The notes under the pieces are model-generated. The model worked only from the letters and a program-made list of their open reading frames with translations, did not search any database and was not told the DNA's origin. The translations under genes were made by a program, and so were the position numbers. This document shows, piece after piece, positions 11,801 through 43,882 of a stretch of 64,000 bases of DNA. Numbering within the stretch: the stretch's first letter is position 1; every line of letters begins with the position of its first letter. The DNA is from Tubulanus polymorphus (lineage: Eukaryota > Animalia > Nemertea). Where the stretch lies: positions 12,742,451 through 12,806,450 of the forward strand of contig NC_134035.1 of the NCBI RefSeq assembly GCF_964204645.1, written 5' to 3'.

Positions 11801-12118
11801 TTAGATTATTTCCATATGGACAAATAGATAAGCGTCTTTACACAGTTCACCATTTTCTTTCAGTAACGGAACATGACGATACCCTGAAAAAACGAATGGA
11901 AATAGAAACAAGTTGTCGCTTTCACAATGAACTGAATACGGTATTCTACAATGATACGCCTACGAATAATCATCTCAAATTGAGATAAACCAACCACCAG
12001 GTGGCGCAATGGGTTTTCAGTAGTAGAAAACCCAACGGTCCAATTAGCTAAATTCATTAAAACCGGCTTAGATGTATATATATATCCCTCCAATAGTATA
12101 TATAGTATTGTAAATAGT

Positions 12119-22759: not shown

Positions 22760-23173
22760 CTGAAAATACAAACCATATCACATACATATATACAGAGAAA
22801 ACTTTTCAAAAAGTGATTTTACAACGTTCCAGGACCACAGTTCTTGGTTTGACTAAATGCGGATGTGTCGCCTTGCGATCGGTTGCAACTGGTCGCAAAT
22901 GAGCGCTTTAACCCCAACGAACACGACGCAGAGAAACTACGGAAACAGGAAACAGAAACATGTTTCCGATGTTTCCTCGTGCAACTATAGTCTCTTTCAG
23001 TCGAAAGAGTAGTGTAAGTCGATTGCGACTGGGAAAAAACACCAAGAATTGAATTATTACATCGCATACCAGCAAAAGTATATTTTCGCTATCAGTAAAC
23101 TCTGATTCAGATATCAACCGCGAACTGTGGAACTGGATCCTGAAAAATAAAATATTATTGATAATCTTATTAC

Positions 23174-23708
23174 AATGATTATAGTAATCACTGGACTGTG
23201 ATAAGTTGCTGTCCAGGCGATGAAATACGAGTCCATTTTCGACGGTTTTTATCGCCGGTTTCACGTTAAACAAACTCTCCTCGTCGCTATCCGTGCGCAG
23301 TATTACTGGCGGTCGAACTGCCAAACCATCGCTCCAATATCTATTACTAAAATCAGTCGGTTGCAGGCGTGAGAAGTGATGATCGCCGCTATCACGCCGC
23401 CTCAAATACGATAACCCATCGTTCCATTTATTACGAGTCGAATCAACTTCCTTCCTCGCATCTACACGGTGTTTAGGACTGGAGGTATATCCGTTAGTTT
23501 TATTGTTTATATTGCGCGTGTTATCGGACTGAGCGACGGGAACAAACGGACGCCGATCTCCTGATTCTGAGCTGGTTGTTGTTGTTGTCACGTCGATGTA
23601 AACAGTCACTTCGATTGACTGATCGATTTTCCGCTGCCAACTCGTGCCCGTTACATTCAAACATGGTTTCAACGACAGATTAATCTCACTTTCATCCATT
23701 ATCATCAT
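23174..23708 (-). CDS. Candidate alternative first coding exon of PLC (178 aa, low complexity)
   Basis: ATG ORF MMIMDESEINL...YYNH then T|GTAATA; 535 nt = phase 1, matching the phase-1 acceptor at 22759. Confidence 0.5.
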
Positions 23709-25639
23709 TCACTCGTCGATAAATCAATCAGTAATCCATTCCAGTCATCGTCCATCGACGAATCTTATAAAATAGCCATTTTGACATAAGATCTAGAAGT
23801 TAGGAAAATGTGCATAAAGGAAGACAGCATTTCGTCGTTTTCTTATAAATCAACAACTAATCCATTTCGATCTTTATTAATCCACGAATTTTGAAACGAT
23901 AGCCATTTTGATCTCTAAGATTTTAGAAGCTTTGTGATAAACGACCCCCAAAACATTTCGTCGTATCTTATTTCGGCATCATAACTCAATATTCCAACAG
24001 TTTATGATACTTTACAATATCCAGAAAGGAAGGTGTAATTGCTTCAAAACAATTACACATATTCCCACAGAACGCGACGTTTTGATGACGATTTTTCGCT
24101 GCGAGTGAAACAAAATTAGTTCAACAAATACTTAAACAAATAATTCATATATTTCACGACGATACAAGTGTAACATTCTGTATTTGACAGTACATACTGT
24201 CACTGTGTATAGAGTAGTATAGTACATACTGTAGCAGGTTCAGTGACTCACTGAGCGTTTTGTCGTCGTCGTTCCAATCAAATACGTTTTTAATTTTTGA
24301 AAAGAAAGTTGTTCTCTTCAAAACAACTTTTTGTTTCTCATTCAGTCGGATGTCGTCGTGACACCCGCAACGCCGTAGAAACTAGTTTACATTTATACTC
24401 AGGAGTCCTTTTGTCAAACCCAGAGACGACATTCTGATCATATCCATTTTGTATTCAACACCGATCGAAGTTTTTAATCAGGTTTCTATTAATTCTATAA
24501 TTGACAATTCGATATCTCGATATCTCGAATTCGATATTGTCCCGGTTTCGCTATTTGGAAATAAAAAAGAAATAATTGCCTATGAATTAATCCATTTATT
24601 CTTAATATATTCATCAAATTGCTCACGACCAATTCGATGGTTGTTGTGGTTAATGACTATGCAATTCGGTTCCTTATATGATGAAAATAAGCTGGAAAAC
24701 AGATTCAGAATCGGGGGGCATGCCTCGAACCACTAATCGCTGAAACAGCAGTCGTCGTAGAATTCAGGATTTACGATTTGATCGGAGAATTAGGAATTAA
24801 CGAACGAAAATTGAATGATTTAAATATGATGATGACGGGTTTTCTGCAAAGCCATTCAGGATGATGGGAATTGTAGTAAATTTAAATACCGATTCATAGA
24901 ATAAAATGCATTGACAGATTCGAACCTAATATGCCACCACTGTGTAAACGTCAAATGTGATTCAGCTCTGAAACCGAACATACGCGGACATACAATCAAC
25001 AAATATGAATTTATCCATTTATTTTGGCATTCAAACATGATTCTGTATTGTCACCACGCTTTGATTTGATCGGAGAATTAGGAATTAATGAACGAAAATT
25101 GAATGATTTAATAAGAGCGCGTAAACACGACTGCCAATTGACCTCGTAGACTGTTCACAGAAAATGCACACATAAAAACGATGAGTATTTTTTTCGTGAT
25201 AACTAGACCAACTACAGCAGCACTATTAGACCAACTACAGCAGCATTATTAGACCAACTACAGCAGCATTATTAGTCTATTATGTTCAGTTCTATACAAA
25301 CGGGCCCACGAAAAAATTGTCCGTGCCAAGAGTATAAGAGAACGTGAATGAATTATGAATGAACGAAAAATATGTTTGATACCAGTTATTCTTTAATACC
25401 AGTTATTATTTCTCAGCAAAAAAATTAAAACCCATTTCGCTCGTTGAAACTTTACCATCACTTCCTATTTGAATAGATTTAAAAAATATTTGCATAGGAT
25501 AGAAAACTAAGAATATTTTGGCAAAATTGTTTCTATATGAGTTGCGCGGTCATAGCTTAATTTTTAAGAAGAGTCTAAGACCATGTTAGATCTACGAGTC
25601 GAGTTTTAACCGTGGAAATGGCTCCTGAAGTCATCATAC

Positions 25640-25736
25640 CTTTTTTATCTTTAGATTGTAAAACCTTCTTTTCCGTTTCGCGTTCTTCTGATTTTGATTT
25701 ATTCGCTGATTTTCTATCGCGTTTCAACTTTTCCAT
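25640..25736 (-). CDS. Candidate alternative first coding exon of PLC (32 aa, K/E-rich)
   Basis: MEKLKRDRKSANKSKSEERETEKKVLQSKDKK then G|GTATGA; 97 nt = phase 1. Confidence 0.55.
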
Positions 25737-26416
25737 GTTCGAGTGTTACGTATATATATATTTATATTTGAGCTAATTCACGGTGTAACAAATTCACGCT
25801 TAAATCCTCCTCCGTTCTCGACACTTTTAGACCTTTACCAGACTTCACGATGCTGGAGACACCGGACCAAAAGGTTGCTAGTACAGAACACGAAGAATTC
25901 AAAAATTCTGAATTAAATTTAAGTTGGAATCAGCTTGTTTTCGATCACTGAAACCGTAACAACCGCAATTGTAACTGAAATCTGCGGAATTGGGTCCAAT
26001 ATGTTGAAATCCGTCTCTGCTTTGTAATGCACTGCCCAGACTGCTACCAACTAATCGCAGTAAATATTACTTATATATATACCCAGCGATTAAACACAGT
26101 TTTATGTATCTGTGTCAATCTCGATTTTCCCTAAATCAACGTCTATAATTCCAGACAATATGTGATCGAATACGTAATTTCGGCGTTGTTGCCTGGACCG
26201 CGAATTATCAACAAATAAATGCAAACACCCGCTAGAACAATACAGACATATTATCTATTATTCATATCGTATGAATAATGATTAGATCGATGATAAAAAA
26301 TTCTTTTTGAACAAACAAAACCTAGATACGAGTTTTAGTGTAAATAGAAATTTCAATTTCAAATATTTTTAATGACAACACCGTGGATCTATAGGTACAG
26401 TGGTTAGAGACTGAGG

Positions 26417-26582
26417 GGGAGAGGGAGAGGGAGAGGGAGAGGGAGAGGGAGAGGGAGAGGGAGAGGGAGAGGGAGAGGGAGAGGGAGAGGGAGAGGGAGA
26501 GGGAGAGGGAGAGGGAGAGGGAGAGGGAGAGGGAGAGGGAGAGGGAGAGGGAGAGGGAGAGGGAGAGGGAGAGGGAGAGGGA

Positions 26583-26620
<38 letters not shown>
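26417..26620. repeat. (GAGAGG)n / (GA)n polypurine microsatellite
   Basis: Directly visible. Confidence 0.97.
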
Positions 26621-26623
<3 letters not shown>

Positions 26624-26726
26624 AGAAACGTTGCATCTTTTAAGATTTTGATTTTAACTTTTTTGATAAACAAATATCATTTTCAATTTTTGAAACTTAC
26701 AATACATTGGGTGTTAATCTGTTTAC

Positions 26727-27183
26727 CTGTTCCTACTATTTTCTGGCTACCATGTCTCCTACAGCCGGTCACCGATCTACTGACCACCGCAGTGACCCCG
26801 GCCGAATCGTCGCCTCTGTTTGTCTTCGACCAGTTATTTAACCGATCATCACCGCTACGACAAGTTTGACACCTTCTCTCCGTATCGGTTTTCGGAGTCG
26901 CAAAAGTGGCCCGTGATGGCACTGTTTTCTTCGGAGGCGCCCGTTCTAGAAAGTCAGTTCGTTTGACCCACACGTCAGTTGAAGCTGGTTCCTGTAGAGC
27001 GGTCTTTTCGGGACATACCACGTACCGCGTGTACGTCATCGCTGGACGAGCCTGATTCGCGGAAGTGGGAGGATACAGCTTTGGCACCGGTTTCGGTGAG
27101 ATTTCAGCTTTCGTAAAGTTGCCATAGTGGCCATCTTGTTCGGGTGCGCGCACAGTTAGATTGTAGGTCTTTTTTCGTCCCAT
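26727..27183 (-). CDS. Candidate alternative first coding exon of PLC (152 aa)
   Basis: MGRKKTYNLTV...KIVGT then G|GTAAAC; 457 nt = phase 1. Confidence 0.6.
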
Positions 27184-29354
27184 TTTCACGAGTCTAATTA
27201 TCCGAATTCAAGTAAGGCGGCCTTCAGTATTAATCCGTCACAGCTACGGCTTAGAACTCTAAAATCGATCTATCATCCAAAGTGTTCGTACGACAAACGA
27301 ATGAACTTTCGTCTTAAACTCCGTATAAATTCATCAAAAGACTCGATAATTATAACAGTTCCATATGAAACGTATACGCACTGGATATCATAGAAACCAC
27401 ACCCTTAATAGACAACTTGGTGCTTAGAATGTATACCACCAGAAGGTCGACCTTATACTTAAAAATAACCTAAAGTTCACTTCTTGTAATACACTACACT
27501 GTTTCACCAGTGGGCCGATAATCCAGTTCTAGTGTGAAAACAATGAAACTGTGACCGGGAGTCATTGAATTTGAACTTTCTCATTTGCTTTTATGCGTTA
27601 GTGTTCTCATTAAAGACCTCGCGTCTGCGTTTAACGTTGAAAACAATTCATCAGCCCGTAAAACGTAAATATAGCTTTCTATTCCGACGAAACGGGTACG
27701 AAAATATCCCCACCACAGGGATACCACTGTTCCGAAGTTAACTCTCCCTCTCGCAAGCTCCCGGCGAAGAAGATTCGATTTCTTACATGTTTTTCGACAA
27801 AATGCCAGTATCGCTATCCCGAACAGCCTCTCTTCAGATCAGCATTACATATAATCACATATACTGCAAACAGCAATATTTTATATTGATCGAACGTTTG
27901 GTGTCCGATCACCGACGCAGCATTTCACTCGAGACATCCGCAGTCGATATACGTCACCAGTTACAGCGTACAACACGACAGCCGAACTGTCGAGTTCGAC
28001 AGGACTGTGACAGAGTCGTTACTCCAGCCTCACAAAGAAACAACCATAGCGATAACCATCACATAGCGAATTACCATGGATAAGACCGCGCTCTGTGTTC
28101 GAATTCCCGCACGAGAAACAAGTTCCAAATCACATTAACTACTAGTATATGTAATTATATCAATGAAATTAGCCCGATTCGATGTATAGATCCTCCGTCG
28201 TCAGAATTCTACAAATATATCACGGTAATGGCCGTTTGAAATCCAGCAGTGTCTGAGCAGTACAACGAGCTGAAGCTGGTGATGAGCTCGTATAGTGAGA
28301 GATGTTGAGTAGTATGAACCGCGCGTACAGAAAGCTACAGACGAACGTCACTACGCGTAGTACATGTTTCAGATGTTGTTAGATACTTGTATAACCAGAC
28401 ACAGCGTAATAGACTATCGTGTGCTATAAACTCATCAGCGAGTTGACAACCATCTGGATGCGTGTGACAATGTTAGACTTTGTTTAGCTCTTAAACCCGA
28501 CGGGTGTTTAAACACAGAACAAGGGTGGTGTGAGTTTTTTCTCGGAGGGGTACGTGTGCGAGCGAAAATATATTTTACAAATATTTCATGAAGCGAAAAT
28601 ATCCATTAGACTCGTCTTAAGTTGGTTATAGTACCATAGAACCATGAGCTTAGACTGGTTTTAAATTGTTAGATTGGCTATAGAACCAAATTGAGCTAAT
28701 ACTGGTCTTAAGTTGGTTATAGAACCAGACCAAGTTTTTTTTGGCTGAATCTGAAAAAAAAACTTAAAACGGTGTATTTCAGCTTTGGTTCATATGAAAC
28801 TTGAACAAAATATTGGAAATGAAACTATAGCTTTTTAGTCATAACTGTGATGGGATCGAGTATGAATGGCGCAACACGTTTTCAAACTGCCGATGCATGT
28901 AAAAAGTCTATAAAACAAAAGCCTATTGACTTTTTTCCGATGTTTCACCAGGATCCCTGCCGCGTTTCACAGCAGTTACCCGGAACCATCCCATCTACCG
29001 AAAAGATTGAGTATCAAGCTGCGCAAGGAATACGACTGCTGTCATTGTCTTTTCGAGAATGGATTCTTTAAGATTGGCAAGAAAAAGTTTCCAATATGTC
29101 ACAATCCCCCGGCAGTGCTGCAGCTTTTGCGCTTATTTTTCGGAATATCTAATTTTTGCTGATGACCACAAGTCTCCTCTTGATGGTCGTTCGTATTGAG
29201 GCCCATCGGGCCGAGAACTGATCAAAACTATCACCGCCGATATTACCGCGCAGTGAGTGTTATTAAGACAATTTCACCTGAACAAATCATCGAATATTAC
29301 TGCTCTATGCTTTCGAATAAATAGCGCAGTTCGACAAATGCGCTGTCACTCACC

Positions 29355-30671
29355 ATGAAGTTGTCGAGTATAGTTGTCCTGTTGATGTTGGTTTGCTGCG
29401 CCCAGGCGCGTTGGAATTGGCACAGACCGAAACCGGCATGTTCGGACATAATGATACGTATAGATGCGTGTACAAATGCTACAGGTAGTAAACTCGACAT
29501 CACCAGTCTGGAAACCGATATCAACAACGCACTCGGGTCGCCGAAAAGATTCACAGTAGGTATTTTTGCGTCTTTGAGGGTTTTTGTGCACACGTCCTGC
29601 CGGGACGGGACAGAGGGCTCATCAGATGAAGAAAAATCCCGGGAAGATAAACTATAAACTAAGAGAGTAGCGACGTTTTTACTTTTATTCTATTATATTC
29701 CGTTTTCAAAAACTAAGAGTTTGAAAATGGCTCATTGAGAAATAATTTGAATTTTAGATGGAATCATTCGCGCCCTTTTGCGAGAAAGGTTATCGGGCTT
29801 GATATTCTAAATGGCAGTTGTCGAATAAACACTATAATCAGTGTATACTGTAGATAAATGAAGAAATCCCACACTTCGAATTTAAAATTATACGATCAAA
29901 ATTTATTATTATGAAACCACAACGTTTCGGCCGTTGACTAACAGCCATCATCATTCCACCTGATGATGGCTGTTAGTCAACAGCCGAAACGTTGTGGTTT
30001 CATAATAATAAATTTGATCGTATAATTTTAAATTCGAAGTGTGGGATTTCTTCATTTATTCTTAATGGCCTTAATGAATCTTTAAAATCATATCACCATT
30101 AAAAATAGACGAAAAAAACTCCATTAGGCCACGGAAACCATCCCCTGCATAATGTATGGTGAGGCTCATTTGACAGTAAATATTATAAAGATTCCTATTC
30201 GCCGCTTCGAATTCAGTCAAAACGTAACTACCGGCTATGTTTTTCTGCGTTTTCTTCAATGATCGATATTGAGCAGCTCGGCTTCAGACGCTGTGCCTCC
30301 TTCAAGCTACAACGACCCACGAATAATTTAGTCGCGGATATTGATCGAATTACAAACCGATCACGAATTTTATTTTCTAGAATTCGCGTTTTCTCAAGAT
30401 CGTGAAAAAAGTGTCGCAATGGCTCCAGTGCGATACACAGACGAATAATTGTACGTCGACCATGTGCACGGGCACGATAAACGCCGGGGTTTTCAACTGC
30501 CACATTTACTTCAAACTACTTCAGATGTCGGAAAGAGCTACAAACACCGAATACAAACAGCCTATTGATAACATCAAAGACGCGATTGATTTGGGACCGG
30601 ATCGCGAAACCATCATCAACGAGCTTAACAAGTATAGAGTGTTAGCGAAAATCCTATCAGCCATCCGCTAA
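29355..30671 (+). CDS. Uncharacterised secreted protein (163 aa precursor, 6 Cys in the mature part), nested antisense in the PLC 5' region
   Basis: Exon 29355-29555 (signal MKLSSIVVLLMLVCCAQA; ACA|GTAGGT, phase 0) joins exon 30381-30671 (ttttctag|AAT) in frame. Confidence 0.7.
29956..29997 (+). ncRNA. Minimal type-I hammerhead ribozyme motif inside a ~206-bp palindrome (29854-30059)
   Basis: CCAC-CUGAUGA-U-GGCUGUU(AGUC)AACAGCC-GAAAC-GUU-GUGG. Confidence 0.8.
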
Positions 30672-31240
30672 AAAATATATTTGAAGAAGGAAAGTTGTTA
30701 AAGAATATATTCTTCTAAAAGCGACTTCACTTTCCATGTATTTTAGTAAAAGAAAAACAACATCTTCGAACGTCTTACTGCAGTAAAATACATATAGACG
30801 TGTATATTTACATATATGTTGCCTTTAAGATATATACGTGTACTATTCACTCATCTATTAAAATGTTGAAATTTACGTAACGAATATAGATTTTAGAAAA
30901 GGATTCCATGAAGTTTCGGTAATTGAAGAATCGAATTCAAAATGCTGTGACCTCATAAAAACGAATCAATGTAACATCTACATCCATTTTATCACGTAAT
31001 AAGTTATTGCATTAAATATTCGACAGTATACCCCTTCAATGAACGGTTTTATGAAATAAGTGGAAAAAAAGCCTAAATGAAAAGCTTGTATTTTGATCAG
31101 CTAAACCCAAAACACACGAAGCAGGAAAATCGTCTGCGTTGGGCTTTTTACATCTGCGTATTTCATCATTCAGTTACCATTTATCTATTGTTTTAGGACT
31201 TGAAAATAATTCTTTCTCATCATTCACACGATTGACTTAC

Positions 31241-31613
31241 CGTCGTGTTCACCGTCCGCGATGGCACTGACGCTACCCTGAGAATGTCGCTCGTATCGAG
31301 TCAGATAATCCGACAACAATCTCTGATAGTGAGTTTTATCCGTATTTGGGGAGAGATAATCCCCGCAATTCGGTAGGATATGATGCGCATCCGGCCGCTG
31401 TTCGTGTTCGAGAAACGGTTCGTTCTCACCGGAAATCGCGAATCCGCCATTATCGATGAGAGTTTGTGGAATGCGTTTTGATGACGGTGCTGTTGTTATC
31501 TTCGAGGCGGACGGTTCTCGTAGAACCCAAACCGGTTCGGAATCGTTCCGGCAACATTCGCAAGGTTTATAGCGAGTTTTAAATAAAGCTCGGTCACCGG
31601 TCATTCTCAGCAT
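31241..31613 (-). CDS. Candidate alternative first coding exon of PLC (124 aa)
   Basis: MLRMTGDRALF...GEHD then G|GTAAGT; 373 nt = phase 1. Confidence 0.65.
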
Positions 31614-34600
31614 CGATGACGAACTATTAATCCGATTCCTTACTGAACAGTCTCACGACGCATGATTCTCAAAGTCACCGTTACGCCTCGATTTTAGCTG
31701 CACTTTTTGATGGATTTTTTCCAGAATATTTTTTCCCGTTCGGTTCGCCTAAATATACACGTTACAATATACGTTACGTTACGCTAAACTTTAAACAACT
31801 GCTTATACGCAAAAAAAGAAAATCTAGCTGATTGATTTATACTTTACTTTACGACTTGCTGAACTAACCTGAACTAACCTGAGAGAATCTGAATACGTTT
31901 AAATGCTTATCTTTTTATAAATTCATAATGAATGATTTACAGAATCATACCTGAACTTAGGAAACCGAAACTAAAAGACACATGTATTCCAGTGATAATG
32001 AGTTATTGAGAAGAAGCAGACTAAAATCACACATTAATGTATCCTGAACGAAATATCCGTATGAAATACGATTCAAGCGAAATCCAACAATCTGAACGCT
32101 GATTCACTCAATAAACCTTCAATTTTACTTGAATTTTAAAGTCTCTTCAAAATGTGGGATTAATCTCAATTAGATATTTTCGTATCAAAAAGATTTAAAA
32201 GACTAGACGCGTCTACGACTGTATGTCAACTGTCACTGGCGTTTCTGTGCAGTAATGTTATTATTCCCCCGATACTTCACCGAATAACTGAACTTCCAAT
32301 AACGGAACCATAACATTTCCGAAACAAGCAGTCACCTCTCAACCCTCTCAACACACACATTTTAATGTCAATATTCCAATATTACAATTTCTGCATTTCA
32401 AATACATTTAGAAAAAAAACTGAAAAAGCTGATTATCAGTCACAATGGTTTGACGCATGCAGTTATGTATAATTGATGATTTTAGATTTTCCATACACGA
32501 CTGTGGTCAGTATATGTTAATGACAAGAAGTCACGACTGCCTGGGTTGATCAAGAATTAGAAGTTAAAAACCTATACGTCACGAAAGATTTGGTTCATCA
32601 ACTTATTAAGCCGGTGATGTGCAAAGATGTAACACGAAAAACATTTTTGGGAAGAATTTGAAACGAACGACATCATGTTTTTTGTTTTGTTTTCTTGTGT
32701 CTCGCACTCAAAAACGGTTCTGTTGAAAAACGTGTTTTTTTACCGCACGTATCACTTTAAATAGGAAAATATATCCGACAATTCCAATTCGACAAATACG
32801 ACTATCCGACAGGAGTTAACTATTCAACTATTTGTTTTTTTTTTCCACTTAACGAAGGAAATATGCCAGAAAATCCGAGAAGTCATCCGGCATCAAACAA
32901 TCATTGGTTTTTTTTTAAATTCCATACTACCACAGTATATAGACTCGCGACAAATTATTTAGTGTTCAGCAGTGCATTAATGCATTCGATAAAACTAGCA
33001 AGGCTAATTGACTGCATCATACTCAGTGGTCCATCCATGCGACTATACCCAGATATAGACCCGTCATCAGTGTCCTCACAGTTACAAACCATTATCACAT
33101 ACATAAATCTAATTCGATATTGTATGACGGCGACGCGATTAGAGTGAGATCCGTTCCATCACTTCCCATCTGTGGATAACTAAATTATGTCAATATTAGG
33201 GAGTTTATAGGTACTCGCACGGGTACTCAGTAGCGACATTACTCACTTATATATCATTACTCTACTCGCACGCACTAATTTAATCATTTCGAGCGTTTTT
33301 GCGCCGCTTTGGTCCCGTTTTCTATCGCGAATTTGATAAATCCCTATAGTGTTAGCCGTAGTCGCGAGCTGGATGGTCGAAGCCTCATGAAAAACTTCAC
33401 CACCGCCGCCGCGGGAATTCAAGCATTATAGATCTCAGTTTCCGCGACGGTTAGACATTATGCGACTCCATTTGCATCAACGTTTCATCTCGACAACCAG
33501 CGCTATTCGTTAGAATTTGTTTGAACAGTTCGGTATTAAGATTTGATGCGAGGGTCAAAACATCTGAAATGAACTTATCTTTCGTCCGACTTTGGAAATA
33601 CTGTAAAACGGGATCCAAATCCAGTTGCAATGTAAAATTCTAGGTTGAGTCTGACTCTTAAAACATCGGAAATTAACTAATGTTAATTCTTGACTCTTGA
33701 GTCACACTTAGGAATAAAACTCTATGGAACCAGGTTCTACCGGTTATTGCGTAATCCATCCGTGAATATTGATTCATCCATATTGTGAAACATTTGTCTT
33801 AATCTCCTCTGATCGTTGCGTTAATCCGATATTGTTCGTATGTGTATTACACACGTTTCACGCGTGAAGTAAAACGATAAGGCTAAGAAGTGATAAGAAA
33901 CCTGTACCTTTATATATAAACTAGTTGTAAAAACAATTACCAACTCCTCAGCGAACAAATCATCGGTGATGACGTGTATACGGTCGATTTTTACGGAAAT
34001 CGACGAGGAGTCAGTTGTTACTATTTGTTTAGTTTCGAACATGTTACAACAACGAGAACTATTTCAACAGTTTCCACTAGCGATAAAACACTGTAAAATA
34101 CACAGTGGAAATGCCCGTTATCCCTCAGAAAAAAGTAAAAATCGCCTAACTTCGTTACGAACCGCTTTTGAAGCTGTTAGCACTGTATAACGATATGCCA
34201 CGTCGGCGTCGGCGTCGACTTTCGTAATAGTTTTCACCACAATTCGATATCGAAAATAGTAGTTTAATTGTAAATGAACGAGAAATCATTAGATTATTGA
34301 GAGTATTTTGATAATTTCGGTAGCGATCGAGTTCTTATAAATAGTTATGGCAGTCAGATCTGCAAATGGGTCCTATGCACGATACCATACAGTTAACCAT
34401 ACATATGGGTGATTCCTATAATATTTCGTTCATTCTTAAATTTAAAATCCATTGTGGAATTATTAAAGCTATTATTATCACTAAAGCGAAAACCTATTAG
34501 ACCTAATTATATCAACAGGTGAACAAATACAATAGGGTTTCGCGAACACTTGCAACAATCCCGGTTTCGACAATACGGTTAAACCTACATATTTCTTTCT

Positions 34601-36077
34601 CTTCTCCGAGATCACAGGAAGCGAGAAGCGGAGCGGGACGTGGGATAATATTGATTTAACGAAAAGCCATTTTTGCACGTGAAATATCTGAATTTTAGTT
34701 GTATATATATCTAATGTGAAAAAAAATGTTCATTTCAATGAAAATTTCAATAAAAATGCCAACTTAAGAATATCCAAATGAATTAATATTGAATAACGTA
34801 ATTCGGCTAAGTAATATTAATGTGAGTCTATTTTCTATGGTCGCTGATTCGGGCCACGCCAAGATTTTCGATCGCGACGACAAATTTGATAGCGAGAAAA
34901 CAAGAAACATTTCTTCATTCTATTCGTATTTTCATAAATCGTCGTCTATTCTTCGGAAGAATGTCAGCGCATAAAGGTGAAAATTAATAGACAAACGTGC
35001 CTCGCAAAATGCCCTCAACAGCTTGACATTTATATGCCGCAGTTAGCTTATAAGCGGATCACATATGTTCAGGGTTTATCTATAATATTCAAGGAACTGT
35101 GGCACCAGTTGACACGATGATATCTAAATGATTGAATTAATCTCTTTGACAGAGAAAATGAAATAAAAATGAAGCCGCACTGAAGTATAATCATCTACCC
35201 TATGAATATCATATTTATGCATTCGTTTCAGGATATATAGGGATATTATCATCGCTTCATACCATTTATCACATGGATATGAATAAATATTGCAATTATT
35301 CAAATTTGTCTGGAAAACTATTATTCGGTATATGTAGTTTTGTTGTAATTTGATATGATAGATGATAGGCCCTATTTATCACAATGTCCATACAGTTTAA
35401 CGAACTGATAAACCTTGATGTAGAAAGCTTCCAACGTATCTTATATAGAGCGAGCGAACATTTTCGGGGTGCTGGGTATACAGGAATACCAAAAATGCTT
35501 TACCGAGTAATAAAATGGTACTATCACAAACCATCAAAAATATTATCCTATATATATATAGCAAAAATGCGTATTTTGTATAAAAGCATCGCTTAAATCG
35601 GAAAATGTTAGATAAAAACTAGACGAAAATAATAATGTAAAATACGGCGTGAAGTTCAAGAACTAGAACATTATGCGAATTCAAATAAACGAAATTTGAT
35701 AAGTTGCGTAAATGCGTTTTTATAACGACTTCCTTACGGCAAGTATGCTTACAATTCTCTTTGAGGAGGAGAGTTTTCAAACTAAATAAACATAATATCA
35801 CTCTCTCACTCTATTACCGCGGAATCGTTACGCGGAGTTTGAGGAGTAAAAAAAAACATCGCACCGCGAAAAAACTGCATAATATAATAATATTACACCT
35901 CAAACACCTCTACTGGAAAATGTCTTTTAATCTTGCTGCCACCAAAAAAAAACACTTTCAAGATGCTTTTGACGTTTTTAACGTCGTTTCTTTGAATTAA
36001 ACCGGATACAAACATGAAACGAGAAACATTAATTCGCTAACATTAATTTGCACGTATTTTTTTGGTTTTCTCCTTAC

Positions 36078-36159
36078 CGCACACCGTAAATAAGACACAA
36101 ACAATGAACACTAGTTTTCCGATTGTTGTGCACGGAATATGAAACTGAAATGCTTTCAT
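36078..36159 (-). CDS. Candidate alternative first coding exon (27 aa, hydrophobic signal/anchor-like)
   Basis: MKAFQFHIPCTTIGKLVFIVCVLFTVC then G|GTAAGG; 82 nt = phase 1. Confidence 0.5.
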
Positions 36160-37994
36160 CACACGGGTTTATGTACCGGATGTATGCGGCCAGTTTTAGG
36201 CACAAGCTCGAACTACCGATCACACAATCGATTCTTTTGCGACCTCGAATTAATTACTCATATTCTCAGCGATAAAGAGACTCTGAATTGAAAAAAGCCC
36301 TAAATAGAAGTCATAATAAAAAACTAACCTGCACCTACGAGCTGCTATTATAGTGTATCCACATCGAAAAAAATTAATGAATTAATATATATCCCTTTAA
36401 GCTTTTACACTCTAATATATATATATATATACAGACCCTATCGAGTATTTCCACCTGGTCATCACGGAGTTATAGAAAACATTAGCAGATGAAGCCTTTA
36501 GTATATATTGCCTACGTATATGATAGATCGGTTCGCAAAACGACTGTTTTTTCCACCACGAGGTCGCGTTCAATGATGTACGCGCACCGTAGCTGAAAGG
36601 CGACCTTCGCGTCCAATCTGCTACCGCGCTTAATTCGCTATTGATCTCATATAATAATCGGAGTCGTCCCTCCCTCGCCCGTCCGTCGCACCAGTCAACG
36701 GAAAACAACGACATATAAACACATATAAACACACACACACACACATGCGCGCGGTCTAAACACCGACTCGTGTGAATCAATGATACATATGTTTCTGCAA
36801 GTAGTAATAATATAAACGTCGATAGGAGCGGGATATCTCACGAGAGAGATCGAGAAAAGGCGCTATGTGATGAGCTTCATTAAGATATTAACGCGGGAGA
36901 CGAGCCGAGTGGCAATCTTCCGTTTTATTACTAGCTACAAAATGTTTGAAGAGCGATGAAGAATCCATTCTCGAAGTGGTGACAGCGCAGTTTCACCAGG
37001 AACTACAGCGACCCCCATTCAATTGCGGGAATTACTGAACATGTAATCAAACGATCTTAGCTTCAGTTTTATCGCTTGTCAATAAAATGGATGTCGCGCA
37101 TGTAAAACCCGCGTAGTTGTAAGACATAAGTAGCCTACATTCTTTCGCAACTATCTAGAACCCCCCAAGAATTACTTCACCCAGTCCTGAAAGTGGCTGG
37201 TTCGCGGCAGTCGAACACGCCACTGTAGTGCTCACGAGGGGGTTCAACTTGAACTGACTTAACCCCTGATTTAGGGGGTGGTCTCGGGGGTCCGGAACCC
37301 TGCCTTCCCATTGAAGTTGCCCTCTTCGTCGAGGCAGAGAAAAGCAAAGAAACTTCCTTTCGGAAATTGCGTATAATTCGGACGCAAAATGATCTAATAA
37401 CGATGGTTGGACGCCGATAGCAGCCTATGAAATGGCTGCTTCAACTGATAGAATTCATTTTCTTTCCTTCTGGTACCCGACCATACAATGTTCCTAGATC
37501 AGCCCATGCCCATGGGCTGCAATATAGCGATAGTCAACACTATAATTCGCAGTGAATAAAACAGTAATCACAATGTGTCGTAATTAAGACAATCTCAGGT
37601 TTCTGATTTTTCCACCGAAACTTGAACGAACGAAGACTGACGTTCCATTTCGTCATTTCGAAATAGTGTTGATGTCATCGGGATTTAATTTTGCTCATGT
37701 ACAACATCACGACGACGCTGTCCGATAGAAAGAAGAGTTGATTCAGTAAACATTCCGATGTAGCGCCAGGAGTGACTGCAGGGAGGTTATTGTGTACGTG
37801 TCCTGCGTTACCGATCACACTAAACAACAACACGACAAACATAACAGAATGACGTTACAGGTGAACACACGTGACCTGGGTACATTCGTATTTTGGGATT
37901 TAGAAATTGGCCAAAGGTTATTGGTCGACGGTTACTCAATCGGTTTTATTCAGCGCTGGATTGATTAACCGGGAACTTTCGTGGATGACATTAT

Positions 37995-38357
37995 CACTGT
38001 TCCCCAACCCCGCTCCTACCCTTGACACTGTTCCCCGTTCCCCGTGGAACGACCCTTGTCGCTGTTTTCCCGCTCACCGCGGAACGGCCCTTGTCACTGT
38101 TCCCCACCACGTTCCCCGTGGAACGGTCCTTGACACTGTTCCCCGTTCCCTGTGGAACGGCCCTTGTTGCTGTTTTCCCGCTCCCCGTGGAACGGCCCTT
38201 CGTCGCTGTTTTCCCGCTCACCGCGGAACGGCCCATGTCACTGTTCCCCACCACGTTCCCCGTGGAACGGTCCTTGACACTGTTCCCCGTTCCCTGTGGA
38301 ACGGCCCTTGTTTCTGTTTTCCCGCTCCCCGTGGAACGGCCCTTCGTCGCTGTCGCT
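37995..38357. repeat. GC-rich complex minisatellite (ccccgtggaacgg subunits)
   Basis: Recurring ctgttcccc / cccgtggaacggccctt blocks. Confidence 0.85.
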
Positions 38358-39044
38358 GACTTATATTAACGTATAGCTACGTTCTCGATCGAATTGAACA
38401 GCCGGAATTAGATCTTGATGAAATCATTAACTATATTCTTACCGGTTTTGAAATATCTTCAATATACTAATATATACTTGACTTAATAAATTTTACCAAA
38501 ATATATTTTGTACGGAAAGTCATTGTATGTATCTTATCTGTCTAAGCAGTTTTCTACATGATAAGCGTCAATTCGCGTTATAGATTTATCAATTTACGAG
38601 GAATTATTTATGAGAGTAAAGCTATGCGGTAAGATGAAGATGTTATAGAGAGAATGGGATGGATATATCGCGTAGTATATCAAATATCTACCCGCGTACA
38701 ACACGTGACACGACTACAAATTCAAACATAGAACAGATCAACGATAAAACGAGGAAAGAGCTTCGTGAAATGAGGACGTTATTGGTTACAGTACGATATT
38801 CAACTGGCGATTATTAGTATGATCACGGACTCTACTAAAACGTTTTAGCGTCCATGGTATGATCGACATTACTTGAGAACTGCGGTGTTTCAGCATCAGG
38901 TTCTAGAAGACTTCAACAGCAAAGCATGGATTCATTCGTTCCTAGGTATATCCGAATCTGACAACCAAACGACACGCGCGTGCCTGGTGTCACCGCGCTC
39001 ACCTGGTCACCGTTAGACAAACTTCCGAACTGTGTCTGTCGCCA

Positions 39045-39112
39045 GAGCTCACTGGTCTAGTGGTTAGCACATTAGCGGTTAGATCGAGGTCCTTGGTTCG
39101 AGTCCTGGTCAA
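39045..39112 (+). mobile_element. tRNA-derived SINE head / tRNA-like relic
   Basis: A box TGGTCTAGTGG and B box GGTTCGAGTCC, but no complete cloverleaf. Confidence 0.55.
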
Positions 39113-39382
39113 CCGTTATGGATGGGAGCGTTTTTTGTTTTTGTTTTGGCGAATATTCATATTTTTGTGTGAAAACTGCTACAGCGTTTTAGGCAGAAGC
39201 TGTCATAAGATGAACAATCATAAGGTTTTCGCCATAATTAATACACCAATGCCATTACCCAGTGCACGTGGAGGCCTACAGCTGGCGCGCGTTTAAGATG
39301 GAATATTCTTGCTAATCAACCGATTAAAACTCGAATCAGCTGTGAATCCCATAATATGACACAGTTAATAGTGAATACTCAC

Positions 39383-39413
39383 GTTCAATGAACCAATCAT
39401 CGTATTGTATCAT
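39383..39413 (-). CDS. Candidate very short alternative first coding exon (10 aa)
   Basis: MIQYDDWFIE then C|GTGAGT; 31 nt = phase 1. Confidence 0.35.
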
Positions 39414-39719
39414 CACTTTTTATTTTTAAATATATATATATATATATATCGATGACACACGTCGATGAAATATCAGCAGCTGAACAGTGTATGGTATTAA
39501 TATATTAATTAATACAAATGTTTTGTACCGATTTATTCCTACGGCTGATGATGATTGCACACATGTGCTTTTCCTGGCATTTGAATTTATCGGAAAAATG
39601 TGTCGCAGCTGTCAAAACGAAACAAAACAATGCATTGTAGCTGACTTCGAATAAAATCCTATCAAACAAGTGACATTTTCATTGCATCCATTTCCATAGA
39701 TTGTGTGGGCTTAATTCGA

Positions 39720-39950
39720 CTCTGAACCCAGTTCCACCAGTTATGTGGCTTTAACTTACTCTGAACCCAGTTTCACAGTTATGTGGCTTTAACTTTACTC
39801 TCAACCCAGTTCCACAGTTGTGTGGTTTTGATTCAACCCTCGACCCAGTTCAAGATTTGTGAGGATTTATTTTGACTCATAGCTTTGTGGGTTTTATTTT
39901 GACTCTGAACGCAATCCCACGGCTTTGTGGCATCGATTTGACTATGAACC
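39720..39950. repeat. Degenerate ~39-bp tandem repeat related to a MITE TIR
   Basis: Unit actctgaacccagttccacagttatgtggcttta contains the cccagttccacagt TIR of 44802-44911. Confidence 0.65.
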
Positions 39951-40029
39951 TAATTTCAAACTAATCACTGATATCAATATTATCTAATCCAACCGATCAG
40001 TTGATTAAGCACAAGAGTTTATATCTTAC

Positions 40030-40765
40030 CGACTCCTTCCGATTGTATCGTAGAAGATGACGCTGATTTTCGATCCCAGTTATCAAAATCGTGTCTGTTG
40101 TTATTCAACCCGTAACGCCGCGCCGCTATTCCGTTTTTGAGATCCAATAAATGATTAGTTTCAAATAGATTGTCGTCGTTGTTACGATGGTGATGGGTGA
40201 GAGGGCGGATGACCGGTCGTCCGGTGCAGATCCCGCCGGGCCAGGTATCACTAGCTCTTCTGCAGTATCCAACGTCACTATTCACAATACTCGTCGCTGT
40301 TTCAAATCGAATATCGTTGTTTGCTATAAGTTTTTCAGGGAGACCCAGACCCGACCGTCGCCGATTCGAAGTACTACATTGTAAAACCGTATTCCCGACG
40401 TTATAGACATAGTTCCTATAGGCGACCTCATCGAAAATCACCTTCGGGACGTGATTTCGTAAACATCTCGATTTTAAATCCGATTTTTGATTAGGTTCGG
40501 GATTCGGTCCGTTAGGTACACGCGTCGGTTCAGCTGTAGATGCAGTTTTCCCGTGGAACAAGTTCGCGCGATTCGCTCTGACGGAAATCCCCTGAATCGA
40601 TGACGTCACTGCGGGAATTTCGGCGACTTTCTTCAGATCAGGTCTCAACAATTTGCCGGCTTCGTTTCTCTCGAGGTATGTCTCCGGACGAGTGAGCGTT
40701 TCGTACTGATTCCTTATCGCGTAGCCTTTAGATTTACGGTTGAACTTCAGCGGCATAGTTTTCAT
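40030..40765 (-). CDS. Candidate alternative first coding exon of PLC (245 aa)
   Basis: MKTMPLKFNRK...SEGV then G|GTAAGA; 736 nt = phase 1; long stop-free ORF. Confidence 0.65.
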
Positions 40766-42312
40766 AAACAGCCACCGAGGCACATTTAGGCCCGCGTCCT
40801 TTAGGCCTGTACACGTTACGGTATCGGTTTGTTTTCGAAAGAAGACAGTAAAAATGCTTCCAAAACGGGATTTGCCCTCTATCAATCCAAAGCTCACGCA
40901 ATCGCCGGAGAAAACAAACCCGATCTTCGATAATCCATAGATTTTCTATATGCTAGGTGTTGATTGAGCGACCGAGACAAATCACACGACAGTTACAACG
41001 ATGGATTCCTGACGACACGAAACTTAAACAGCGCCGCGTAAAATTCCGATATTTGTTGATATGAAAATGCGTTTTATATCATAAGGTTTTTTATCTCGTA
41101 TAAAACGTTTGACTCTTAAACACTGGATGAATACTTTACATAATATAACTATAGATGTCAACACGTGTGCGCCTCCTTAAATATGGATCGAATACTTGGT
41201 TCGCAACGGATCCCGTTGTACATTATGTACAGTACACAGGAACAGGGACTATAGTTTACAGATTTTCTTTCATATTTGCGTAAAAAAATAAGGCGTATTG
41301 CTCTATTTTAGAAACTATAAAGTGAAGTACCTTTATTAACGAAACAAAAGGTGACACTTAGGTAATGAATTCTATGTATGTATATATAGGGGAAGGTGAC
41401 GGCGGTTATTGAGGTTGTTGAAATACATATATACATCGCGTCTGAAGGATTTTTATGTCGGAAGCATCTGCGACGGGACTCGATAACACGACGCAGCTGT
41501 GTGCGCCGTTCATTCAACTTATATCGTCGAATGAGAAGAGAATGTGCAGAAGTCGCCTCATAGCGCGTTCACTCGTCGCGCGGGCGGTACCGTCAAAAAG
41601 AAACGGCTACTTGCCACACTCAAAAAACGTGGAGAAAGATTATTTGTAAATACAACTGATCAAAATCCACTTTGCACCGTACATTCAACTTCAATGGAAT
41701 GAGAAAAAAATAAGACTTCGCGTTGACCGTCTTGTCGCGGGATATACCGTCAAAAGAAACGCATGTAGCACATAGTAGACTGTATAGCCACACTCAAACT
41801 TCAGAGAGATTTGATCAAAAACTGACCAAAAAAACCCACTTTGCACCGAACATTCAACTTGAATGGAATGAGCTGAATAAAGTCTTCGCATTTACGTGTT
41901 GGGATATACCGTCGAAAGAAACGACCGTGACACAATATGCGATTCATCCAATAGCATAAATCAACAAGTTTCTTTTTCAGTTTTGTTCTAACACGGGTTA
42001 AGCCACAGTGACAACTCTGTAACAGGGGTAAACCGTTGTTCGAATAGCTATAGACCCAAGATGGTCTCAGACTATTAGATCGGTAATAGAACTAAGGTGG
42101 TCTTAGACTGGTGTTAACGGGTTACGGGTTATGCAACAGTGAAATCTATATTATGATAAAGAGGGAAACGGCTATAGAGCTAAGGCGATCTCAGACAGGT
42201 CATAAATCTAAGAAACTGCAGCCTCTGAATGTCTGTACATACCACAGCGAACGTCACGTACTGTTTATTACTGTTTACCCGCAGACGATACCACGCGCGT
42301 ATTGGTAATTAC

Positions 42313-42400
42313 CTTCGTAGTCGTGGTCGATTAGCTGATTACTGTCCGGTTTCACCTGACTCGCATCAGAAAGCGTCATTTTCTTCCGTTTCGAAGACAT
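42313..42400 (-). CDS. Candidate alternative first coding exon of PLC (29 aa, KRKK)
   Basis: MSSKRKKMTLSDASQVKPDSNQLIDHDYE then G|GTAATT; 88 nt = phase 1. Confidence 0.55.
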
Positions 42401-42727
42401 AACAATTGCTTATATCTACCGGGTATCTATGCATTAATACTCACGACTATACTGTGAAGAAAACGCCTATACGATTGAAAACGTCTTATCATTCGTGTCA
42501 AAGATTATAATACGAGGTTTTTTCCGCCGGCCGAAATTATACTTAATCGAGGGCGGTTAAAGTCTAATTCAAAACTAAAGAATCGCTCTGAATAATATGT
42601 ACTTAGAAGTTCGGCTTCTTAAGAAATTATGTTTATCTTATCTTGTTTATATTATCTTAAGTATTTACCTTAACTAAAAAAATTCGTACCTTCGAAACAA
42701 ACATTATTTAAGAACCGACCCCCAATA

Positions 42728-42806
42728 CAGCCTATCAACAGCCTATCACCAGCCTATCAACAGCCTATCAACAGCCTATCAACAGCCTTTCACTAGCCTA
42801 TCACTA
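42728..42806. repeat. 11-bp tandem repeat (cagcctatcaa)
   Basis: Directly visible, about 7 units. Confidence 0.85.
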
Positions 42807-43692
42807 TCCTACCTGTCTTACTGTTAACTAGGAAAACCACGAATAAAATTCAAACTCGGGAAGATACATAAGAAAAATCCATTGCTATGCTTAGTTATAA
42901 TTAAAGACGTTTTTAACGGTAAACTCGAATAGTCACGCGTCGAACTATTGATGTTGTCTATCCAAGTCGTATATTGCATGACTTTGATGTATATATTCAG
43001 CAACAGCTTGTTCAATTTCATTTGAAGAGAACTCGACTCAGATCTTTTCTGAAGAGCTTTAATTAAACTATTCACGCGGCGGAAATTGAATTTTGTATGG
43101 ATATCGCCGAAAACTGGGACTCGGTCTGCGCTGGCGCGCTGCAGATTCATTAGTCGAAACACGCACGGAAGTCGCATCACACAAAACCATTCAATCCAAT
43201 TCATTCTTTATTGACGCCGCTCAATATGCCGTTTCGTTTGACCCACAGAAAGTTGTCCATGCGCTTTGAACGCGAACTCATCGAAAACAACTTGCACCGT
43301 ACGTTGACAGGTTTCAGTCGGCAGCTGGTCCGATTTCGCGCAGCGAGCGTTCATAAAGTAACGCACCCAAAAATCTTACGATTTTATCATCAAATTTTCT
43401 ATACGTTTTGATTCACACAAACAGGCGATTTTTTTAGTTTGATACATTTAAAGTACAGACATAATCACCAATACATCCTCACGTGAAGGTACGTAACTTT
43501 CTCCCGTTACAACCCTCAGCCCCTCAGCCCCAATTTCCGGGTAACGGGTCCGTGCCAAAAATTAGATCCCCCTCCTTCCAAAATAGCTACGAACGTTTTG
43601 GACTCTCTCGTAAAATTCGAATCAATTTTCGAGATTTAAATCGCAACAAATAATACATGAATCGGTTACAACTACACAAAATAGACTCTTAC

Positions 43693-43882
43693 CTTTCGAA
43701 TCGACGCGTTTGAGTATTTTGGTGCCGCGTCGAGTCGACCGGCCGCTCTTCCTTTTGAATAAACTCCCTCGACTCAACCGTCTACCAGCCGACGAGCGAC
43801 GTCGTTTAGTCGACACTGGGGGAGACGGTTCCGCATCTGAAGCCTGTATTGAACTGGTCAGTCCTACAGACTCACTCGCCAT
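43693..43882 (-). CDS. Candidate alternative first coding exon of PLC (63 aa, polybasic)
   Basis: MASESVG...KRVDSK then G|GTAAGA; 190 nt = phase 1. An upstream acceptor (~43977) and donor (~45091) suggest a 5'UTR exon. Confidence 0.65.

Follow-up and report, generated by a model that had tools for sequence, protein, structure and literature searches.

A PLC-delta gene of the nemertean Tubulanus polymorphus with a series of alternative first coding exons ahead of one constant core

Five alternative first coding exons are joined to one constant PLC-delta core

We analyzed a 64,000-nucleotide (nt) stretch of the genome of the palaeonemertean Tubulanus polymorphus (contig NC_134035.1; hereafter the window, numbered from its first letter), whose minus strand contains the 5' half and the core of a PLC-delta-1-like gene. 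This gene very probably carries a series of alternative first coding exons in the 21 kb upstream of its constant part, at least five of which are used, with two further long ones probably belonging to the same series. A first reading of the DNA (the original prediction) had proposed about nine alternative N-termini that can be spliced onto one PLC-delta core. The variable-first-exon/constant-core layout that it described is real, because five of its nine candidates are the first coding exons of the six RefSeq isoforms X1-X6, each joined directly to the exon that begins at 22759; the count of about nine was not borne out, as 4/9 of the candidates are unannotated.

The gene was identified through its common PH exon, whose translation of 53 amino acids (aa) had a sole match among 1.84 billion representative proteins, namely one 920-aa protein that is 100% identical to it at residues 180-232. 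The 90% cluster of this protein contains six RefSeq proteins with accessions within XP_074659937 to XP_074659943, named 1-phosphatidylinositol 4,5-bisphosphate phosphodiesterase delta-1-like, isoforms X1-X6 (927, 920, 873, 812, 781 and 778 aa, respectively). The range spans seven consecutive accession numbers for six distinct proteins, a surplus that would fit two transcripts encoding one shared protein. By spliced exact mapping, 6/6 isoforms were placed on the window with zero mismatches, and 748 residues are common to all of them after the first exon; the exon structure described below matches the public isoform models exactly. Precomputed Pfam assignments for the 920-aa protein (PH_12, EF-hand families, PI-PLC-X, PI-PLC-Y and C2) give the core the domain order of the PLC delta class, that is PH, EF-hands, X, Y and a C-terminal C2, with no additional regulatory domain. 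Its best named relatives are without exception PLC delta-1 or delta-4 proteins, with 43-48% identity over 99% of the core, and come from Lineus longissimus, Owenia, echinoderms, a hemichordate and vertebrates.

All isoforms converge on the first constant exon (22759-22598, minus strand), which holds the start of the PH domain, has phase 1 at both ends and serves as the common acceptor for the first exons. As originally predicted, this exon has no start codon and requires one upstream base, and hence a phase-1 donor; it is preceded by a pyrimidine-rich ...ttttcag and ends in TCT/GTGAGT, where the slash marks the splice site. The other 17 constant coding exons, located by exact mapping of the six proteins between 11801 and 20791 on the minus strand, encode the rest of the PH domain, the EF-hands, X, Y and C2, for a total of 18 constant coding exons from 22759 down to the stop codon at 11801.

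Exact mapping placed the five annotated first coding exons upstream of this acceptor, all on the minus strand. Their donors were scored with an approximate metazoan matrix, such that all bit scores given here are rough, and their codon usage was compared with that of simulated open reading frames (ORFs). The most distal exon, that of X4 (43882-43693; donor AAG/GTAAGA, 10.3 bits), encodes 63 aa plus a split codon and yields a tail with an isoelectric point (pI) of 12, clusters KRRR and KRK, and 29% Ser/Thr. It is followed by the exon of X6 (42400-42313; donor AAG/GTAATT, 7.5 bits; codon-usage z = 2.0), which encodes 29 aa including KRKK, and by that of X3 (31613-31241; donor ACG/GTAAGT, 10.3 bits; z = 1.7), which encodes 124 aa and whose frame closes 4 codons beyond the donor. 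The X5 exon (25736-25640; donor AAG/GTATGA, 7.4 bits; z = 2.5) encodes 32 aa, 41% of them Lys or Arg, and the exon shared by X1 and X2 (23708-23174), nearest to the constant part and separated from it by a 414-nt intron, encodes 178 aa. The X3 and X1/X2 exons are each single copy in the 268-Mb genome. At the level of gene models, five alternative first exons are therefore spliced to one constant acceptor, where two or more would define such a layout. The RefSeq models use five donors rather than only one or two and do not chain the ORFs as consecutive exons, and Pfam finds no other gene in the interval to which the ORFs might belong.

Two of these exons have additional features. A second donor inside the X3 exon, at 31430 on the minus strand (CCG/GTGAGA, 9.7 bits), is in frame and in phase 1, and its use could produce a 61-aa tail in place of the 124-aa one. 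Past the X1/X2 donor, the frame stays open for 87 codons into the 414-nt intron (22911-23173, minus strand; P about 0.006 by stop-codon frequency), a stretch that has non-coding-like codon usage; if the intron after this exon were retained, the product would be 266 aa long and would lack the PLC core.

The upstream interval contains an excess of phase-1 first-exon signals on the gene's strand

The nine upstream ORFs have the form ascribed to them by the original prediction, with 9/9 beginning with ATG, free of in-frame stops, of a length of 1 mod 3 and followed by GT. Their donor contexts, from the most distal to the most proximal, are AAG/GTAAGA, AAG/GTAATT, TCG/GTAAGA, AAC/GTGAGT, GCG/GTAAGG, ACG/GTAAGT, CAG/GTAAAC, AAG/GTATGA and ATT/GTAATA, with donors of the GTAAG/GTGAG/GTATG kind in 7/9 candidates, and the codon predicted at the junction with exon 22759 is GTA (Val) in seven candidates and TTA or CTA (Leu) in two. 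Most of the ATGs have an in-frame stop 0-13 codons upstream, with no in-phase acceptor in between. Using an acceptor matrix trained only on the gene's own 17 AG acceptors, we found that the 400 nt upstream of X1, X5, X6 and the candidates at 27183, 36159 and 40765, six of the nine in total, contain no acceptor-like AG, and that such sites are present upstream of the X4 ATG (43975), the X3 ATG (31950) and the candidate at 39413 (39608). Chaining of the ORFs as consecutive exons is ruled out for the five annotated exons by exact mapping, and is unlikely for the unannotated candidates because most ATGs have an in-frame stop shortly before them and in-phase acceptors are lacking.

The original prediction had argued that the shared phase of its five long ORFs would have a chance probability of (1/3)^5. 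This argument is invalid because the donors were picked after the fact, and the five ORFs are a selection from the 21 on the minus strand that have 60 aa or more. An unbiased scan of the interval, in which an ATG-initiated ORF had to span 9 aa or more and its terminal donor had to score 7 bits or more, returned 6, 10 and 2 hits in phases 0, 1 and 2 on the minus strand and 0, 2 and 1 on the plus strand, compared with about 2.1 per phase in a third-order Markov simulation. When the thresholds were raised to 8 bits for the donor and 60 aa for the ORF, 0, 3 and 0 hits in the three phases were left on the minus strand. The strand- and phase-specific excess, on the minus strand and in phase 1, is clear and real despite the rough donor scores. 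The lengths of the frames also depart from expectation: open frames of 308 and 266 codons are above all or nearly all of 200 simulations (95th percentile 195, longest 286), and three ATG-initiated ORFs of at least 150 aa were observed where about 0.04 per strand of the region would be expected, with the candidates masked from training.

Two of the four unannotated candidates are plausible additional first exons

The four unannotated candidates, on which the proposed count of about nine depended, fared differently, with two well supported in silico, one weak and one at chance level. The longest (40765-40030, minus strand; donor TCG/GTAAGA, 7.3 bits, phase 1) is not in RefSeq and would encode 245 aa with a pI of ~10. 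Its open frame of 308 codons exceeds the longest found in the 200 simulations, its codon usage is coding-like compared with simulated ORFs (z = 2.0, p about 0.02), its donor lies 2 codons ahead of frame closure, and it is single copy in the genome; the frame is open for 60 codons upstream of the ATG, but only poor acceptors occur there (0.50 pyrimidine). The second long candidate (27183-26727, minus strand; donor CAG/GTAAAC, 7.5 bits, phase 1), likewise absent from RefSeq and single copy, would encode a basic tail of 152 aa (pI ~10). It lies in a 174-codon open frame with the donor 13 codons before the stop, and has the top codon-usage score among the long candidates (z = 3.0, p about 0.002). 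Both equal or beat the annotated exons of X1, X3 and X4 on the codon-usage test, and we consider them plausible additional first exons by these sequence features, perhaps expressed in unsampled tissues or stages.

The two short candidates are less convincing. The 27-aa hydrophobic candidate at 36159-36078 (minus strand, not annotated; maximum 19-residue hydropathy 2.1) has a donor of 9.4 bits (GCG/GTAAGG) and belongs to a class, defined for one phase by an ORF length of 25 aa or more and a donor score of 9 bits or more, of which about 0.27 would be expected by chance; its codon usage is not significant (p 0.08), and it is a weak candidate for a first exon. The 10-aa candidate at 39413-39383 (minus strand, not annotated; donor AAC/GTGAGT, with the acceptor-like AG at 39608 mentioned above) is indistinguishable from chance, as about 1-2 short ATG-plus-donor combinations of its class are expected per phase in the interval. 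The original interpretation is hence partly supported: it was right in kind, with five of nine exons right, two more plausible and two unsupported, and the promoter choice and targeting tags that it proposed are putative.

The tails are unrelated to one another and have no recognizable domain

The nine peptides are mutually unrelated, as the original prediction had it: an all-against-all BLASTP comparison gave no significant pair, with a best E-value of 0.14 in what is a tiny database. A Pfam search found no domain in any of the nine. Homologue searches, limited to proteins of 0.55-1.75 times the query length in a database that includes the RefSeq proteins of T. polymorphus, returned no homologue of the 245-aa tail among proteins of 135-430 aa and none of the annotated 178-aa X1/X2 tail among proteins of 98-311 aa. 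Because the annotated tail, serving as a control, was also blank, the blank for the 245-aa tail is uninformative on its expression. Look-ups of these two tails in the ESM Atlas gave no usable match, and language-model recognition was low and about equal for one annotated and one unannotated tail (1071 and 1122, versus 2300 for typical known families).

Two possible origins of the tails were considered and rejected. Weak BLASTP matches of the tails to the PH regions of relatives, which might have marked them as degenerate PH-domain duplicates, were taken as noise, since the database was tiny, the E-values were 0.003-0.9 and the order of the matches was inconsistent; Pfam detects no PH domain in them. 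A transposon or repeat origin is rejected, since the four long ORFs are single copy in the 268-Mb genome.

PLC-delta enzymes are located and regulated largely via their N-terminal PH domain. One would expect basic clusters beside this phosphoinositide-binding domain to influence localization to the membrane or the nucleus, and the most likely role of the tails would be that of modulators of the membrane or nuclear localization, or of the regulation, of a PH-domain enzyme.

The same switch point occurs in PLC-delta genes of other animals

Annotated relatives of the gene also begin with alternative N-termini. In Lineus, the delta-1-like protein (RefSeq X1-X5) has three with lengths of 49, 19 and 15 aa, of which the 49-aa one starts with an MGxxxS myristoylation-type motif, and the delta-4-like protein (RefSeq X1-X3) shows similar N-terminal differences; PLC-delta has two alternative N-termini in Patiria miniata and three in Acanthaster planci. 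In an alignment, the point at which the isoforms converge is identical across species and lies immediately before the first PH-domain strand. The PLC-delta proteins of Lineus, Patiria and Acanthaster share with that of Tubulanus this switch point, the PH-EF-X-Y-C2 layout, and tails that are short and often basic. The relatives differ in having only two or three N-termini of 1-49 aa, whereas Tubulanus has five annotated ones of 29-178 aa and may have seven, with lengths of up to 245 aa, and the tails are not homologous between Tubulanus and the relatives by BLASTP. Because two or three alternative first exons are found at this place in Lineus, in two sea stars and in others, the layout is an ordinary one and the number alone is high: judging from these comparisons, a variable-first-exon layout at the intron before PH is a widespread property of PLC-delta genes, from which Tubulanus stands out only by the number of its tails and the length of some of them. 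The original statement that no PLC-delta had been described with this many N-termini is consistent with the two to three found in annotated relatives, and a literature search turned up no paper on alternative first exons or promoters of PLC-delta.

Multiple variable first exons form a known class in mammals, for which a passage in PMC1885805 (citing Zhang, Haws & Wu 2004) lists protocadherins, UGT1, plectin, NOS1 and the glucocorticoid receptor. The Tubulanus locus functions as this class does. The original prediction had likened it to protocadherin, UGT1 and plectin, and the likeness to the first two breaks down on one defining point. Protocadherin alpha/gamma and UGT1A do resemble the Tubulanus gene: their first exons stand in tandem upstream of the constant ones, and the first constant acceptor receives the 5'-most donor that is transcribed. 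Their variable exons, however, are paralogous duplicates, each encoding a whole functional domain and undergoing birth-and-death evolution, whereas the Tubulanus tails have no mutual similarity by BLASTP and no Pfam domain. The locus is not a cluster of the protocadherin/UGT1 type, because its variable exons are not paralogous tandem duplicates of a homologous domain. It is closer to the plectin/NOS1 type, in which, as in Tubulanus, several mutually unrelated first exons with their own donors share one common constant acceptor (PLEC1, NOS1, glucocorticoid receptor); in plectin, as in the Tubulanus PLC-delta gene, the first exons also encode differing N-terminal tails. The Tubulanus case departs from this class in being a nemertean PLC-delta gene with orphan tails, whose separate promoters and tissue specificity are putative.

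A model for first-exon choice and its alternatives

Combining these results, we propose a model in which each upstream first coding exon, having its own ATG and a phase-1 donor and presumably no acceptor, would be transcribed from its own start site and spliced to the single phase-1 acceptor at 22759, with any first exons lying further downstream removed as part of the intron. If such exons have a donor and no acceptor, they would be mutually exclusive, and whichever of them is transcribed would be the one joined to 22759. The catalytic core is common to all predicted products, which differ in the N-terminal tail directly ahead of the PH domain. This tail is 29 to 178 aa long, perhaps up to 245 aa, and the tails are lineage-specific, domain-free and in several cases strongly basic.

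Several observations weigh against this model or against its full extent. The support for the five annotated exons consists of RefSeq gene models; the NCBI pipeline builds alternative variants from transcript alignments. The X1/X2 donor (ATT/GTAATA) is very weak, scoring 0.1 bits by the generic matrix. X4 and X3 may be preceded by non-coding leader exons, and so may not mark true transcript starts, because acceptor-like sites lie upstream of their ATGs. The codon-usage test is low-powered, with core exons at 0.10 +/- 0.13 versus a null of -0.07 +/- 0.17, and X1 (z = 0.5) and X4 (z = 0.2), both annotated, score null-like. No tail homologue was found, so that any purifying selection on the tails is putative. 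Finally, the four candidates at 40765-40030, 27183-26727, 36159-36078 and 39413-39383 are absent from the 90% cluster that would be expected to hold them if annotated.

This last point leads to the alternative that only the five annotated exons are real, the four others being ORFs due to chance, remnants of earlier exons or intronic sequence that is not translated, which we regard as possible and somewhat doubtful. None of the four is among the six members of a cluster that would have absorbed such isoforms, the isoform numbering follows length from 927 aa downward and leaves no slot for forms of about 994 or 901 aa, about two phase-1 hits are expected by chance in the interval, and neither homologue nor domain was found. 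The two long candidates are nevertheless difficult to explain in this way, as chance would very rarely yield open frames as long as theirs (308 and 174 codons), the 245-aa and 152-aa ORFs have coding-like codon usage, 7-bit phase-1 donors stand just ahead of the closure of both frames, and the annotation itself depends on the tissues sequenced. A further alternative is that the long ORFs at 40765 and 27183, and possibly the 266-aa frame at 23708-22911, are independent orphan genes nested in the intron and not PLC exons. Their lengths beyond chance and the open stretch past the annotated donor of the 23708 frame agree with this; we nonetheless hold it to be very improbable, since the size-limited searches described above found no protein with the sequence of the 245-aa or 178-aa tail, the 23708 ORF is a PLC first exon by exact mapping, codon usage past its donor is non-coding-like, and phase-1 donors lie right at the ORF ends.

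Other alternatives accept the exons and differ from the proposed model in the way they are used. Some or all of the 'first' exons might be internal and mutually exclusive, placed behind one shared non-coding leader and promoter. The strong acceptor-like AGs upstream of X4 (43975, minus strand; 12.3 bits, 93 nt upstream of the ATG), X3 (31950; 9.8 bits) and the 39413 candidate speak for this arrangement, the first of them suggesting an additional non-coding 5' exon beyond 43975, and the accession number without a separate protein may be that of a transcript with a different 5' untranslated region. Six of the nine candidates, X1, X5 and X6 among them, lack an acceptor-like site in the 400 nt upstream, and X4 is the most distal exon, with the divergent neighbouring gene starting ~7 kb further, so that one common leader seems distinctly improbable to us. 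It is also conceivable, though rather unlikely in our judgement, that the first exons act mainly as alternative promoters for transcriptional control and that the tails are neutral by-products, namely young unconstrained ORFs that happen to have an ATG and a phase-1 donor. The absence of homologues and domains, the low language-model recognition, the null-like codon usage in X1 and X4, and the lack of relation of the tails to one another and to those of relatives all favour this reading. On the other side, dense clusters of basic residues, typical of membrane- or nucleus-directing segments, are found in three short tails (KRRR/KRK, KRKK and 41% Lys/Arg), relatives carry basic or myristoylation-type (MGxxxS) tails at the same position, and ORFs of 124-245 aa are unlikely to last without selection.

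Under the proposed series of alternative first exons, five to seven interchangeable tails ahead of PH would, if true, be a compact means to send one core to different membranes or compartments in different cells, and the orphan nature of the tails makes the locus a possible natural example of the birth and capture of new coding first exons. In the strongest form of this idea, which is speculative and which we think unlikely, the 21-kb 5' region would be a capture zone, in which intronic ORFs that gain a start site, an ATG and a phase-1 donor become fused to the PH-EF-X-Y-C2 core; the gene would thus have gathered at least seven N-terminal extensions, as long as 245 aa, that are specific to its lineage and possibly born de novo; two are missing from the annotation, and each would confer a different location or regulation. 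The layout as such is common in animals, PLC-delta genes of other phyla have it at this very position, and the five exons are already public in RefSeq. No new mechanism is involved; the value lies in an unusually rich and well-defined example, together with two candidate exons for annotation (245 aa and 152 aa).

Other features of the gene and its surroundings

Within the constant core, a 21-nt microexon (15471-15451, minus strand) adds 7 aa between the Y box and C2. Isoforms X1 and X3-X6 contain it and X2 skips it, which is the sole difference between X2 and X1. The core also contains two introns of the U12 type, whose consensus consists of the donor /RTATCCTT and a branch site resembling TCCTTAAC located 10-15 nt before the 3' splice site. 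One is an AT-AC intron (20459-20218, minus strand) with the donor ATATCCTTT and the branch site TTCTTTAAC, followed by 10 nt and then the terminal AC; the other is a GT-AG intron (17574-17173, minus strand) with the donor GTATCCTT and TTCTTAAC, followed by 12 nt and then CAG. Both agree with the consensus in donor and branch site.

Repeat arrays occur in and around the variable region and account for several long spurious ORFs on both strands. A tandem array of 28 copies of a 60-nt repeat (20852-22545; 95% matches) occupies the greater part of the intron that follows the first common exon. A (GAGAGG)n microsatellite (26413-26621) is located just downstream of the candidate exon at 27183, and a third array, of a 108/144-nt repeat, is found at 38019-38353. 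Pfam searches of the other ORFs of the 21-kb interval returned no domain, no recognizable gene and no transposon protein, and an Rfam scan of the whole window found no family at the gathering score. A 100-aa ORF on the plus strand (29355-29657), antisense in the 5' region of the PLC gene, has a signal-peptide-like hydrophobic N-terminus and no Pfam match, and may be due to chance.

Upstream of the PLC gene and divergent from it, ORF pieces resembling the ligand-binding and kinase-homology regions of a receptor-type guanylate cyclase mark a gene with exons at ~51500-59000 on the plus strand. As this next upstream gene lies on the opposite strand and starts at ~51.5 kb, the 21-kb interval belongs to the 5' region of the PLC gene.

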